Source: Mytilus edulis (lineage: Eukaryota). From it: a DNA stretch of 64,000 nt. A program made the translations under genes and the position numbers. The notes under the pieces were generated by a model. That model did not search any database, was not told the origin of the DNA, and saw only the letters and a program-made list of their open reading frames with translations. The first letter of the stretch is position 1. Every line of letters begins with the position of its first letter. Positions 18,699-26,000 of the stretch are shown here, in pieces. The stretch lies in assembly GCF_963676685.1 (NCBI RefSeq), contig NC_092344.1:98642001-98706000 (forward strand), written 5' to 3'.

Positions 18699-20093
18699 GT
18701 AAGTATTACAATGTTGAAAAACCCAAGAAAAGTGTGAATATGGTCAATGCATTGGTATTGGTTTTGTAATTATTTGTTGGATTTGGCATTGACATTTGTT
18801 TATGGCATTGTGCCATCTGAAGCATTGTCTCGAATCGTTTTATAAGGTCCATGTATATTGCTTTAAAAAACTAACAACCTCTTGGGTAAGGGAAAATTAA
18901 ATGTAACAGTTGGGGCAAGCACCTGCTAACAGCGAAAGAAGATAAATTTGTGATTACAACAGTAAGACAGTAGATACGAAGTATTGTTATAAATAATATG
19001 ATAATTTGCAAAATACATGTCTTTAGAATAGTTTGAAATTATAAATTATATAAAGCTGTAGTTTAAATAATTACATGTATGTTGTCTTGAAAGGCTATTT
19101 TATATTTTTACTGTGACGGTTTCCTATATTAAGTATATAATACACCTTATCGCTATTTGTTTGCCATTACTGTACATCGCAAAGGTTCAGCTAAAAATTT
19201 GACGTAACTATAAAATATCTGACGCTTCAATCATTGAATGGGAAAGTGTTTTTGTGAGATGTCAAAAGTTCAAGGAGCGCAGATTCTTTGTGGGTCAACT
19301 GATGCAGAATTCTAAATAGGTGTATGCTGACAGCTAGACTTTTATATATACTTTATGAGGTTCATGTATATATACACAAATTCTCTCAATTTTAATTTTT
19401 GTGATTGCTGGTGCAAAATATTTCCAATGATTTTCAAATGTAATAAAGACAAGTGTATTTAATTTACAATTCCAGCAGGGTCGACAATCATCTACATTGT
19501 ATTACTTCTTACAAGATCCTTCACTTTTGGAGACAATAAAATGAATCTACAAACTCTATGATGGACCCTAATTTTCTGGATTATGAAAATAGAATGTTTC
19601 AAAATTTGTTGGATCATCAAATTTTACAGTTAAGGAAAACAAAAATGTACTATATGTTTAAAATGATTATGACTATGAGGCAGTTTAAAGCACCTTTTTA
19701 GTATGAATTTAGAATATGTTGAACTTTACCTCTATTGGATAGTCAGTCGAATCCTTTATCCTGAAGCTAGATTCTCTTGAAGCTTATTATATAAATCAAC
19801 TTTTTAGTTCTGGATTTTATTTTATTCATAGATTTACATTTGGCTGCCTGAATAGCTTGTCAAAACCCAGATAAATGAATAAAATCTTCTAAGCTGGGAA
19901 TATAATTTTCCTACTTATTTTGAAAGTCATGAATGTGTACCCGAATGTAGTGAAAACTGATACATCTTTACTGAGGGCAACTTTACACATTCATGAACCG
20001 GTAGTAAAATTGTATTCAGGTTTCACACAAAGGCAAAGCAATAATATAATATGATATTTACCAATATTCCTATATTCTCTTATATTTATACAG

Positions 20094-23000
20094 ATGACAT
20101 CTATGAGTGGAAAAGCCTCCACAAATGGAGCGTCCAATGGTGTTAATGGATTACCTAATGGCAATTCTAATGGACCTCAGAGGACCAAACTTGGAAGTAT
20201 TGGACCTAATGGATATCCAAGACTTCCCCCAATCAGTAAACCACAGAAGAGAGGTGATGACCCCTATGCCAACAGTAAACTGATGACTTACAGGTTGGCC
20301 AATGCCAAACAAGCCATGCTGATGAATATTTTGTAAGTTTTACCAAATTTATCTTAAATTATTATGATTATAAGAGTAACAAGTATACATGTATGTATTT
20401 ATATTATATTTGTCATGTAGATATACCATATTTTAAAATTTTGTATGACAGAATATATCATATCTGGATTTTTTATTTGAATAGAAGTGCTATTTATTTG
20501 TTTATTTATATATCACTCAGAGTTCATTCTACATGTTCTATTGTTTTAATATATATGAAATCATACATTGTGTCATACTTGAAGTTTCAAAATAGAAAAT
20601 AGAAAAACAAAATGTCTCATCATAGAGTCAGTAAAGAAGAAGATATTTTATTTCCAATTATGGGCCCCAAAGGGCATAAACATTACAACATCAATAATTT
20701 TCATAATACAATACAAATTATGATATAAAAAAAAAAGTAAATGATCATAGAAAATAAAGTGACTGCTGATTCCAAATGAAAAAAAAAGTTTAGTAAAAAT
20801 TAACTTAATTTGTTATTTATTTTATAGAACTGAAAAATCCATGCAGGATTATGAAGAGACCCAAGAATTAAACAGCATTGCCCCAGAAAAACCACCAAGT
20901 CCAGACTATCCTCCAGAGGTAGGAGCTTTATGCTATCTATTATTTTTGGTTATCTGTTGTCATGATGATACTGCATTGTCTCTAAGTTTATAAGAAGTGG
21001 TAAAACAATTCGAATTATATACTAATCCAATACTATTTATTTGGCCCATAAATTTTCCTATAACAATTTTTTTTTATCACAGGTTGGTGATTTTGATTAA
21101 ATAGAAAACTAAATGTAGATAGTTCTATTCATGACCTGAATGAGAGGATTTAAAGTGACTGATTTCCTTGAAATAGAATTGTACATATCGATGGCTTAAT
21201 TGACCCTCTACAATGTTTCTGAAATGTTAATACATGTATGTTCATAAAAAAATGACATTATAAATGGGAGCAAATGTTCAAAGCTCTATAGTTTTAGTCA
21301 TATCTCTGTTTGGAATCTTATATATATTGAGACTAAATATTTTATATTCCCATATACTGTATTATTTAAATTTCCTGGTAAGTTTGAACAAATTGTGATT
21401 TCTAATTGATCATTGTTTGGAGGGAATTATTGTTGTATTAGTGTTATGTTTTACACAACTTTGAACACGTTTAATTCAACCACATGCACAAGGATAAAAC
21501 ACATTAATGTCGTCATTGTAACAATGCATGCTGTATTCACCAGATGATGAGCAATGATCGTAAAATTAGGGTATGTATGTAAGGTGTAATAGAACAATGC
21601 ACATTGTAACACCCTGCACCTCAGTATTAGGGTATATTAGTTGTAGTAGTAGATGCACACTGTATATTGTATTATGTTTACATTAGATGATGGGGAAGGA
21701 TCGTAGAATCAGGGTATGTATAGGATGGTGGTAGCTTACTAATAGATCCTGTGTGTCTTAACTTAAGAAACTTTTCTTAATTGGCTAATATCTAAGAATG
21801 TCAGTATGATACTATCCAACACCCCACATATTCTACTGACTGGATTTTTAATTTTCTGAACCTATTTGACTTTATTTTTTAAAACCATTTTTTTTTCATT
21901 TAATGAGTTAATTGATTGTGACAAAAATCAAAAGAATAGAATATTTAATTGCATGGTTCCCTTTAATCCTGAAGTGAAATTACAAATCTGCCTATGAAGC
22001 CCATTTGTGTGTATTTAGCCATATTTAGAAAAGTTTCAGTTTCAGCTCTTCAAAGACATGTTTCAAATGTCCCAATAAAAATCATCTTTCTACATTAATT
22101 TTACATGTTTTTAGTTCTAAAGATAGCTATTAGTGATCTTTGCAAGTCCTGTAAAAAAGAAGATGTGGTATGATTGCCAATGAGATAACTGTCCACAAGA
22201 GACCAAAATGACACAGACATTAACAACTATAGGTCACCCTACGGCCTTCAACAATGAGCAAAGCCCATACCGCATAGTCAGCTGTAAAAGGCCTATTCTT
22301 AGGTGACTCTTAAGATATTTACATTTTAGATCTCTATCTCAATTAGAATTTTTGTATCATCAATTGTTGACTTACGAAAAATATAAAAAAAAAAATTCCA
22401 ATAAAACCCAAAGTAATTTACATACATTTTGACCAGAAATGTTTGTTTCCAGACAAATGATTATCAATTACAGAAAATATAACAAAAGCAGTACTATCAT
22501 TTCATGTTTGAAAGGCACCAGATCGAAAATGTTAATAATAAAAAAAATGATAAATCTTTGGACACAAACAGCTTAGATTCATCCATACAAATATAAATTA
22601 GTTGAGAAAAGTAAAAAAAATAACTCTGCACCTGATTCCCGATGGTTTATCCATTAAATAATTGATAACAAATCCTGAAACAGTTTTGTAATTTAGAGAA
22701 ATTTTGTTGATATTTAGAAGAGTTAGATATTTATACACTTAAATAAGTCATATGTTGTCCCCTCCATTTTTTGTTTACTCATTGTAAAGGAATTCAGGCT
22801 GACCATACCTACTGAACAAGTAATATGAGCTAGCCTATATAAATAATGAAACATGTCTTTATACTTAACCTATAGTCTTTCAGTCTAACATACCTGCTTC
22901 TTTCTGTAATACCTCTCATGTGTTGTGATTTTTATGTGTCCAAAACAAGACTATAGCTAGTATACAGTGATTATAGAACAGTATAATATGAGTATGAGGT

Positions 23001-26000
23001 TTATTGTGTATTCTCATTACATTAATGTCTCGTTTGAATCACAAATTTTACATGCAAAATTACAACTTTTTATAAGTATACAATGAATTGTCACTTATAA
23101 GTCATTTGAAATAAAATGGATTTTTTTTTACATTCAAAGCAAAAAAGTCATACAGCTGGTAAATTTGCAAATTCAGTCCTGAATAGGAATGTAAATATTT
23201 AGTGACCTATTTCTTGTTGATAAAATTGAGAATAAAAATAGAGACAACAAACCATCAAAAGAACAGAAAACAGCTGAATGCCAACAATGGGTCTTTTACA
23301 CAGTGAGAAAAATCCTGCACCCGGAGACATTTTTCCCTGGGACAGGCGCACACATGTTTAGGGGTTAAAAATTCTTTGTGAGATCTAATCCCCTCCCCCC
23401 TTTATACCTCTAACCAAATTAGAAAAACGAAACACCCAGCAATACAAACAGTAAAACTCAGTTTTAAAGATGACTGTATTCTGGTCAATAGATACTGTCT
23501 CATTGACTCACACCCCATTCATTATTCATATATATTAAACTCTTTCTTGACTTGTTCATAACAGACAGTTTTGTAAGTTGGAAGTTTATTATATGGGATT
23601 GAATTACATTTACCTCAGGTTTAAAACTTTTTTTATTTTTTTATCAAATTTCACCATGATTTGATACATTTCCAAATATTATCATTATTTACTCTAAAAA
23701 TGCCGGTAATGATCAGCTGTTTGGCTAACACAATTGACCTCTGTTTTTAAGCAGAATGTCTACCTACATTGAAGTTTAATAGACTACAACAAACTATTGA
23801 TCATATTGATTAAACATTTTTTAAAGATCATTTATTGAACCTACACTTGGTAGTTTTCCAATTATTAATAAATATTTATTTTCATAGAGAATATTTAAAA
23901 CTCTACTTTGGCAAATGAGTTTGAAAATATTTATTTTTTATTATGCATGATCATACTGATTATTTACTGAAAAATAACATAAAAAAGTAAAAACTAGAAA
24001 CTCTGAGGGACCAGTACACATTTCCAATATTTATGTAGAAAAAAAAACCCATTTCATTCACTGCATAAATTTAAAAATAGACACTACATTTTTTTGAACT
24101 CAAAAAGATATTTATGTTCTAGTTATAAACCTAACCTACAAAAAAGAATCATGAGTCATATAGATCAGGTAAATGAAATAATTTTCTTGGCTCTAATAGT
24201 CTATTCATGATAATTCATCTAGGAATACATTATATGTATTAGTTGAATAAATTATGTTTGAAGCTTTCGCTATAAGAGCTCTAACTCTTATTCTTTTAAG
24301 AAAAAAATGCAGTCATCTATCACATGATTTATCATTTTAAATGACTAAATACCCATCCTTTAATTGCACAGATAGTACAGTTCCAGTAAAACTAAACTCA
24401 TTGATAATACAACCTATTTCTTACAACAATAAAAAAGAAACAATTCAACACATAAGCTCATTGTGAGTTACAGGACCTTCAAAAATCCAAATGAAACAAA
24501 ACTTATGTTTCCAGAATAAGTAATGTTTGATTAGTTCCCCTTGAAAGTGTACTATGTAAAAGCTGTATAAAGTGAAATACAGTTATACTCATATTTTTAT
24601 GCATAATTTACTACAGCTGAATTACCAATACCTGAAGAAATGTGTAGAAAGTGGACCAATCACACCTATGCAGAAAGAATGGTCAGAACATATACTGACC
24701 ATGATTCCAGAGAAACTACAAATGACTGTTCCCCTCAAAGAAGTTATCAGTGAATTGTTTGAGGAAATTAAAGAAGATTATACTGGAAGCATGAAAAAAT
24801 CCATGGGTAAATATATTTTTTTTTAAAGCTAAGAAGATGGATTTGTGGTATCTAATTCTGTATGACCCATACGACATGGTCAGGTTTAGTATCAAGTTTA
24901 CTAGGACTTTATACAGTTTCAGGGGAGATAACTTCTGTATGACCCATACGTCATGGTCAGGGTTAGTATCAAGTTTACTAGGACTTTATACAGTTTCAGG
25001 GGAGATAACTTCTGTATGACCCATACGACATGGTCAGGTTTAGTATCAAGTTTACTAGGACTTTATACAGTTTCAGGGGAGATAACTTCTGTATGACCCA
25101 TACGTCATGGTCAGGGTTAGTATCAAGTTTACTAGGACTTTATACAGTTTAAGGGGAGACAACTTTCAAAACAAGAATAATGTTCATTGTTCTGTTGCCA
25201 CAAGTTTGTTCATGATGACTTCCAATTCGTAGTAACTCAATCTAATCACAGGACTTAAACTTTTAATTATCATGTATTACATACAATGACTTTGTAAAAC
25301 AAAAGTGAAAGTTTTGCAGACTTTTTAAGGTTAAAAATGATCACTTCGATTTCAATGTAAAAAAAGCATCAAGCATCCTGTATTTGATTACTGAATCTAT
25401 TTTTAGTTCAACATGTATTAGTAAAACCAGAGGTAAAAGGACTTGATGGTGATGTAGCAGGACCACCCCCAGCAGAGCCTGAGTAAGTATATATAGGATT
25501 AGAGATCAAATGTCATAGTTCAACTTGTGTAGTTGTAGAAGTAAAAGAAAACTATAGGTAGAATTAGTAGCATATAGTCAAATCTCAGCTAGTAAGGATC
25601 ATTCTGGACTAAATGTTTTCACAGGGATATAAAACATACACATCTTTTTAGATTTCATAGTAGATATCATTACATTTCATTCATCTAATCTGATTGACTG
25701 ATATAATCAAACAACCTTTTAATGTTTTACAATAAACTTTTTTTATAATAATGACTTATTACTCAAATATTATTGAATCATAAAACTGATTTTGTATTTC
25801 CATAAAAGAATCAATCTACTGCATGCTTTTAAAAAATGTCTTCCACTTTGCTGTCTGTTGGGTTACAGGTCATATCCTTTATTTTTATTGCCATTATTTT
25901 GAATTACATGTATACATATGTTATAGATATAGTTTCATGTAAGTATTATTTCAAGTTCTTCCCAGCTATTTTTATTGTTGTGAAAGTAAATCCTATCTGG

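Follow-up and report, generated by a model that had tools for sequence, protein, structure and literature searches.

A tandem pair of 27-nt microexons in the tail of the mussel dynein gene DNAH12, one per assembled transcript

The DNAH12 gene of the mussel Mytilus edulis contains two paralogous 27-nt microexons, A and B, side by side in a single intron, and RNA contigs assembled from four public sequencing runs carry one or the other of them, A in one run and B in three. A likely explanation is that an ancient 27-nt microexon of this DNAH12 orthologue was duplicated in tandem, that both copies were kept, and that they are spliced one at a time, so that one gene yields two heavy chains. The DNA analysed, referred to here as the window, is a stretch of 64,000 nt (assembly GCF_963676685.1, contig NC_092344.1, positions 98,642,001 to 98,706,000); positions in the mussel gene are given as positions in the window. 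The pair had been proposed in an earlier note made from the letters of the window alone, and we examine here its sequence, its transcripts, its orthologues and its possible consequences for the dynein arm.

Two paralogous microexons in one intron of DNAH12

The coding exons around the pair all lie on the + strand. Exon 1 (20094..20332) begins with the ATG at 20094 and ends in phase 2, exon 2 (20828..20918) ends ...PDYPPE in phase 0, and exon 3 (24617..24806) starts LNYQYLKK. Exon 1 rests on a 20332->20828 joint seen in all four runs and on a tblastn match to the orthologous protein P0031, exon 2 on joints 20918->21544 or 20918->21687, and exon 3 on its alignment to human and bovine DNAH12 (residues 95-154); the introns of the gene model are all GT..AG. 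The best PDB match of exon 3 is DNAH12 (E 1.5e-12 vs 2.5e-5 for DNAH7), as is that of a motor exon (3e-66 vs 3e-58 for DNAH7), tail and motor alike ranking DNAH12 above DNAH1, DNAH3, DNAH6 and DNAH7, and the N-terminal layout P.YP.., nine residues and then [LF]NYxY[LM]KxCVES is present both in the window exons and in bovine DNAH12. Judged by these sequence matches, the gene is the mussel's single DNAH12 orthologue, coding for the heavy chain of inner dynein arm a (IDAa). Exon 3 has a single locus in the genome, and the A and B forms described below therefore do not come from paralogous genes. Each exon served as a query of its own; a word search with exon 3 alone returned matches to genomic ORF fragments only.

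Microexon A (21544..21570, + strand; ATGATGAGCAATGATCGTAAAATTAGG) codes for MMSNDRKIR and microexon B (21687..21713, + strand; ATGATGGGGAAGGATCGTAGAATCAGG) for MMGKDRRIR. Both are 27 nt long and in phase 0-0, both have an AG directly 5' and end at an identical donor, AGG|GTATGTAT; an intron of 116 nt (21571..21686, + strand) separates them. The earlier note had described just such paralogous phase-0 exons with this spacing and a shared donor, and it had also placed the end of exon 2 (20918) and the start of exon 3 (24617) correctly. The two copies are identical at 22/27 nt and at 6/9 amino acids. Repeat finding places them within a direct repeat of 54 nt with 78% identity and a spacing of 143 nt, in which copy 1 (21525..21578, + strand) comprises exon A with 19 nt of 3' splice region before it and 8 nt of donor behind it, and copy 2 (21668..21721, + strand) is its counterpart around B.

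The pair is unique in the assembly. A degenerate pattern that combines the exon with its splice sites has two matches in the window against 0.00 expected (100 shuffles), and the same pattern has two matches in the whole 1.37-Gb assembly, which are A and B. The 3.7-kb intron between exons 2 and 3 offers eight open AG-27nt-GT candidates, of which only A and B are similar to the orthologous peptide, and neither the pattern scan nor the candidate scan of this intron found a third, decayed copy. The exons are thus adjacent, equal in length, identical in phase, homologous and bounded by canonical splice sites, a combination that counts among the features by which membership in a cluster of mutually exclusive exons (MXEs) is judged.

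Outside the exons, similarity persists in the immediate flanks, where 12/19 nt are identical upstream (63%) and 8/8 nt in the donor downstream, and then falls to ~25%, which is the random level, at more than about 20 nt upstream and more than 8 nt downstream. The divergence of the intron sequence, to which the earlier note had pointed, accordingly holds farther out and does not hold for the adjacent 19 nt upstream and 8 nt downstream. Since the intron flanks have decayed to random while two frames and four splice sites are intact, A and B both look to be under selection; purifying selection predicts exactly intact frames and decayed flanks.

One microexon in each assembled transcript

To follow the pair into RNA, Logan contigs of four public runs from four studies (X1, X3, X4 and X8) were placed on positions 19950-24850. 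The kind of run is listed as 'RNA?', yet GT..AG introns are removed and the contigs therefore represent spliced RNA; the intron between exons 1 and 2 (20332->20828, GT..AG) is absent in all four runs. A contig of X3 (1194 nt, depth 14, exact junctions) joins 20918->21544 and 21570->24617 and so contains A only, and the contigs of X1, X4 and X8 join 20918->21687 and 21713->24617 and contain B only. The letters between the flanking contig pieces number 28 in X3 and 117 in X1, X4 and X8, which leaves room for exactly one 27-nt exon, neither two nor zero. Depths by bin agree, with X3 covering A only and X4 and X8 having spliced depth over B only. Because X3, with A, and X8, with B, come under one organism label, the difference between A and B is not one between species.

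Neither a joint of A to B (21570->21687) nor a joint that skips both (20918->24617) is present among the joints listed for the contigs of the four runs, at a level of detail set by the Logan contigs, which retain the dominant path and drop rare variants, so that minor forms of either kind could escape. A comparable alternative form would be expected to split the 1.2-4.2-kb contigs at the borders of exon 2 and exon 3, which suggests that each run is strongly dominated by one form. At contig level, then, mutual exclusivity as it had been proposed from the sequence is supported for the dominant assembled isoform in four runs. The four joints that link A or B to exons 2 and 3, which had been put forward as a check, are all present, and the contig joints display neither of the outcomes that had been named as contrary, namely the use of one exon only or the constitutive inclusion of both.

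An unspliced contig of X1 (669 nt) covers 21389-22042 with both exons intact in tandem, and its sole exonic change is a synonymous T>C at 21567. In the intron it differs from the reference by ~2% substitutions and by indels; the differences include A>T at 21609 and, at 21679, the loss of 3 nt from B's pyrimidine tract.

A nine-residue segment of fixed length

The position filled by A or B is old and its length does not vary. In all 20 of the 20 aligned orthologues, exactly nine residues lie between the P..P.. stretch and [LF]NY, and the segment is single-copy in the DNAH12 of cnidarians, gastropods, a protobranch bivalve and cattle. It reads MMSKERRIR in Littorina, MMGEDRQSR in Solemya, MMSKERRIR and MMSRERRIR in the jellyfish-like P0041 and P0116, MMSKDRRTQ in P0031, MMSKDRRIQ in P0039, MMS[DE]DRRMR in P0108 and P0118-P0120, and MNSEQRKRR in the vertebrate-like P0048. 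Bovine DNAH12 has PDYPPT-MTSEIKKKA-FNYIY (continuing FNYIYLKQCVES), in agreement with the single nine-residue segment that the earlier note gives for vertebrate DNAH12. Among the orthologous proteins and transcript fragments compared, none has two copies of the segment in series, and since the orthologues have nine residues there, only one copy, A or B, fits. The alignments leave out P0037, a fragment that resembles a genomic ORF of a human or another primate.

The exon border is old as well. Many genomic ORF fragments end ...Q right before [LFI]NY, this Q being the CAG of an acceptor, and in P0068 the reading frame runs on across a short GT..AG intron at this same point; from these two observations the intron 3' of the segment is old.

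Several gene models deviate at or near the segment. The DNAH12-like model of Elysia marginata (P0121) reads ...EMPPE|MNYRFLK and is without exactly these nine residues; this is likely an annotation miss, the alternative being a form that skips the segment, and it fits the earlier suspicion that gene predictors would tend to overlook such an exon. A search with the Elysia query found the Littorina and Solemya models and no mytilid one. In the Solemya velum model (P0139), a zinc-finger/transposase-like N-terminal part and a C-terminal sugar transporter (PF00083) are fused to the DNAH12 tail, and the model is probably a chimeric annotation. The vertebrate-like P0006 (278 aa) contains the region of microexon and exon 3 (MNSEQRKLRMNYLFMKESVESSP...KRHLV) twice, which could reflect a local segmental duplication or an artefact of assembly or annotation. 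The P0005 cluster represents a close mytilid relative, with 86% identity.

Counterparts of A and B in other lineages

A scan of metagenomes gave one informative contig, L004 (JAAUYG010136670.1, invertebrate), whose exon 3 is 61% identical to that of the mussel; a scan of prokaryote genomes gave no matches. L004 contains a single exon of 27 nt, located 883 nt upstream of its exon 3, with the sequence tatttag|ATGATGAGCAATGACCGGAAAGTTCGG|gtaagt, which codes for MMSNDRKVR. This exon has the A-specific residues N4 and K7, and it shares 22/27 nt with A vs 18/27 with B. No second copy of the microexon is found in the 1039 nt upstream of it or in the 882 nt downstream. As a separate feature of this contig, long C-rich runs lie just upstream of the acceptors of the microexon and of exon 3 (L004:960-990 and 1905-1940; ccccccccccc and ctccccccctcccccccctccccc).

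Exon B keeps the K4 and R7 that are general in metazoans, and its G3 is common to B and to the Solemya segment MMGEDRQSR. Each mussel copy thus has a counterpart elsewhere, A in L004 and B, through G3, in Solemya, which fits an old duplication with loss or non-annotation in other lineages. The duplication could predate the split of the lineages of mussel, L004 and Solemya, with annotations showing one copy per species; a later duplication with convergent changes could also have given rise to these residues.

Two probable heavy chains from one gene, and other readings of the data

Duplication with splicing of one copy at a time is the reading that we consider likely, and it can be laid out as a series of steps. 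An ancient 27-nt, phase-0 microexon, coding for nine residues just before the LNYxYLKxCVE tail helix, was duplicated in tandem. The assembled transcripts are either exon 2-A-exon 3 or exon 2-B-exon 3, which would give two DNAH12 heavy chains whose variant residues would sit where the tail attaches the arm to the doublet. The choice between A and B may be set by cell type or stage, for instance in different ciliated or flagellated cells, through trans-acting factors that would act at two weak 3' splice sites, and the two forms may tune the docking of the arm or its contacts with partners. A wider version of the same idea, in which A and B form an old, bivalve-wide switch that gives ciliated cell types (e.g., sperm flagella vs gill or larval cilia) their own IDAa docking variant from one gene, we put forward tentatively, as possible rather than probable.

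The distribution of the two forms over the runs can also be read in terms of genotype. Each run has one form only, samples and studies differ between the runs, and in a highly polymorphic bivalve cis variants or haplotypes could produce allelic splice variants with no regulated programme at all; the substitutions and indels of the X1 contig, among them the deletion in the pyrimidine tract of B and the A>T at 21609, would be in keeping with this. We nevertheless regard a genotype-dependent choice as unlikely, given that the reference and, independently of it, the X1 contig preserve both exons together with the four splice sites, that both exons have been retained where the flanks have decayed, and that A-type sequence is conserved in the distant L004, a point in favor of A having been in use for a long time.

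The same conservation bears on the status of A. Its form is the sole assembled path in X3, its N4 and K7 recur in L004, and a neutral copy would be expected to decay like the flanks, all of which makes it quite improbable that B is constitutive and that A is a duplicate, seldom used or leaky, without a separate function, with X3 as an outlier, even though three of the four runs use B and B is nearer to the metazoan consensus MMSKDRRIR (8/9 residues vs 7/9 for A). As for the combination of the two exons, any arrangement would stay in frame, since each is 27 nt in phase 0 and the 116-nt intron can be spliced, and A and B might then normally be included together as an 18-residue insert or behave as plain independent cassettes. 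This we judge to be very improbable indeed, as the contig arithmetic in four of four runs allows one exon only and the orthologues have exactly nine residues at the segment.

How the choice of one copy might be enforced

If A and B are spliced one at a time, as we favor, the known mechanisms of exclusivity (steric hindrance, a filter by frame and NMD, U2/U12 incompatibility) are the natural candidates, and none of them corresponds to what is found in the A/B sequence, which counts against this reading. A frame/NMD filter is inapplicable because the lengths of A and B are multiples of 3, and U2/U12 incompatibility is inapplicable because both donors are of the U2 type, GTATGT. Steric hindrance calls for a distance of <50 nt from donor to branch point; the intron between A and B, at 116 nt, is long enough to splice and has an AG-free zone of 32 nt before B, which puts the proximal branch point >80 nt from the donor of A.

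Two further candidates were considered, of which the first was rejected and the second lacks support. A tropomyosin-like steric block could in principle operate through a distal, branch-point-like TGTAAC (21605-21610) at a distance of 38 nt from A's donor, but five AGs follow this site and its position 21609 is changed from A to T in X1. Looping-out by stems was suggested by short inverted repeats that bracket A (21517-26 / 21602-11) and B (21629-41 / 21738-50); folding of the A/B region is no better than that of shuffled sequences (z = +1.0), and the 21609 A>T polymorphism weakens the stem that brackets A.

By elimination, the two weak 3' splice sites would compete with each other under regulation, and the UGCAUG/UGC words before A are, on sequence grounds, a candidate element. 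The earlier note had pointed to a TGCATG upstream of A and an ACTAAT after B, and both are there, the latter as TACTAAT 3' of B. The TGCATG (21525..21530, + strand), a candidate regulator site identified by motif match, is an RBFOX-type word. Together with two UGC words it lies after a candidate branch point, TGTAAC (21517-21522), and before A's acceptor, and copy B lacks these words. TGCATG occurs 20 times in the 64 kb, which corresponds to a chance of ~0.6% in a given 20-nt stretch.

Position in the protein and possible effect

The proteins with A and B differ at three residues (S/G, N/K and K/R), with B having one more positive charge; these changes are conservative, which is a further point against the favored reading. 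An AlphaFold2 model of the orthologue P0031 (a 178-aa fragment, 20-row alignment, mean pLDDT 73, pTM 0.26) has the segment, residues 106-114, at the end of a loop; a helix of residues 109-126 begins inside it and continues into LNYRFLKSCVE, with pLDDT 65-85 there. The differences between A and B are thereby predicted to fall at the N-cap and first turn of a tail helix. A Foldseek search of the N-terminal model against the PDB returned no significant fold match.

In human axonemes, the heavy chain of IDAa is DNAH12, which carries actin and a DNALI1 dimer and is situated at the base of radial spoke 1 (PMC10266980). DNALI1 is bound by the DNAH12 stem (PMC11949491), and one source names IQUB as a factor of radial spoke 1 (PMC11755891). 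Where single-headed dyneins dock is determined by their divergent N termini (PMC10266980). For mussel DNAH12 we infer by orthology the same site at the base of radial spoke 1, as part of an IDAa that carries actin and DNALI1/p28. It would be a reasonable consequence of the swap between A and B that docking or a partner contact is altered.

Relation to known systems

Tandem-duplicated mutually exclusive exons are well known, with exons 5a/5b of SNAP25 and exons 2/3 of alpha-tropomyosin as examples. A and B resemble such clusters in being neighbours within one intron, in having the same length, phase and splice-site type, in occurring one per assembled transcript, and in giving isoforms that match everywhere but in a short homologous stretch. 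They depart from typical MXEs in being only 27 nt, far shorter, and in combining lengths that are multiples of 3 with a 116-nt intron and U2-type donors. Criteria for predicting MXEs have been set out by Pillmann et al. 2011 (PMC3228551), and surveys of MXEs are available (PMC5740500, PMC9741552).

The nearest example by gene is an MXE in the motor domain of the cytoplasmic dynein heavy chain DHC1 (Kollmar 2016, PMC5100056, citing Pillmann 2011). Both cases lie within dynein heavy chain genes, but the DHC1 exon belongs to a cytoplasmic motor domain, whereas A and B lie at the very N-terminal end of the tail in a single-headed inner-arm dynein of the axoneme. The same work cautions that the N-terminal 100-200 residues of dynein heavy chain models may hold mispredicted or missing exons (Kollmar 2016, PMC5100056).

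A second comparison is with conserved, tissue-regulated microexons that depend on SRRM3/4 or RBFOX, many of which are in photoreceptor cilium genes (bioRxiv 10.1101/2021.09.08.459463). Like these, A is very short, deeply conserved and frame-preserving, has UGC/UGCAUG near its 3' splice site, and belongs to a ciliary gene. Regulated microexons are cassettes that are included or skipped, whereas the A/B position is filled in every assembled transcript and the choice is between paralogous copies.

A search of the literature on axonemal dyneins, DNAH12 included, and on exons that are mutually exclusive or duplicated in tandem gave no description of such a pair in an axonemal dynein tail, and the earlier note likewise knew of none. 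Differences among inner-arm dyneins have been ascribed to separate heavy-chain genes with divergent N termini that set docking (PMC10266980). Here, one gene would provide two N-terminal variants by swapping a nine-residue microexon, through which a mollusc might adjust a single arm (IDAa, at radial spoke 1) to different kinds of cilia or flagella, an idea that can be tested. If the reading as an old switch were true, it would amount to a splicing-based route to an axonemal dynein diversity that is otherwise credited to gene paralogues. For annotation, the pair illustrates that a conserved 27-nt exon is easily missed, as the Elysia model would suggest, and that a second copy would be invisible to standard gene models.

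Repeats in the neighbouring introns

Two repeats were observed in the introns close to the pair. An element of ~140 nt at 22152-22293, inside the DNAH12 intron, has a summed contig depth of 10^4-10^5 in all four RNA runs, and hundreds of contigs continue into unlike sequence at 22152/22153 and at 22293; it looks like a highly abundant, transcribed short interspersed repeat (SINE/MITE-like). In the intron just past exon 3, a tandem repeat with a 77-nt unit is present in four copies of 96% identity (24856-25165).
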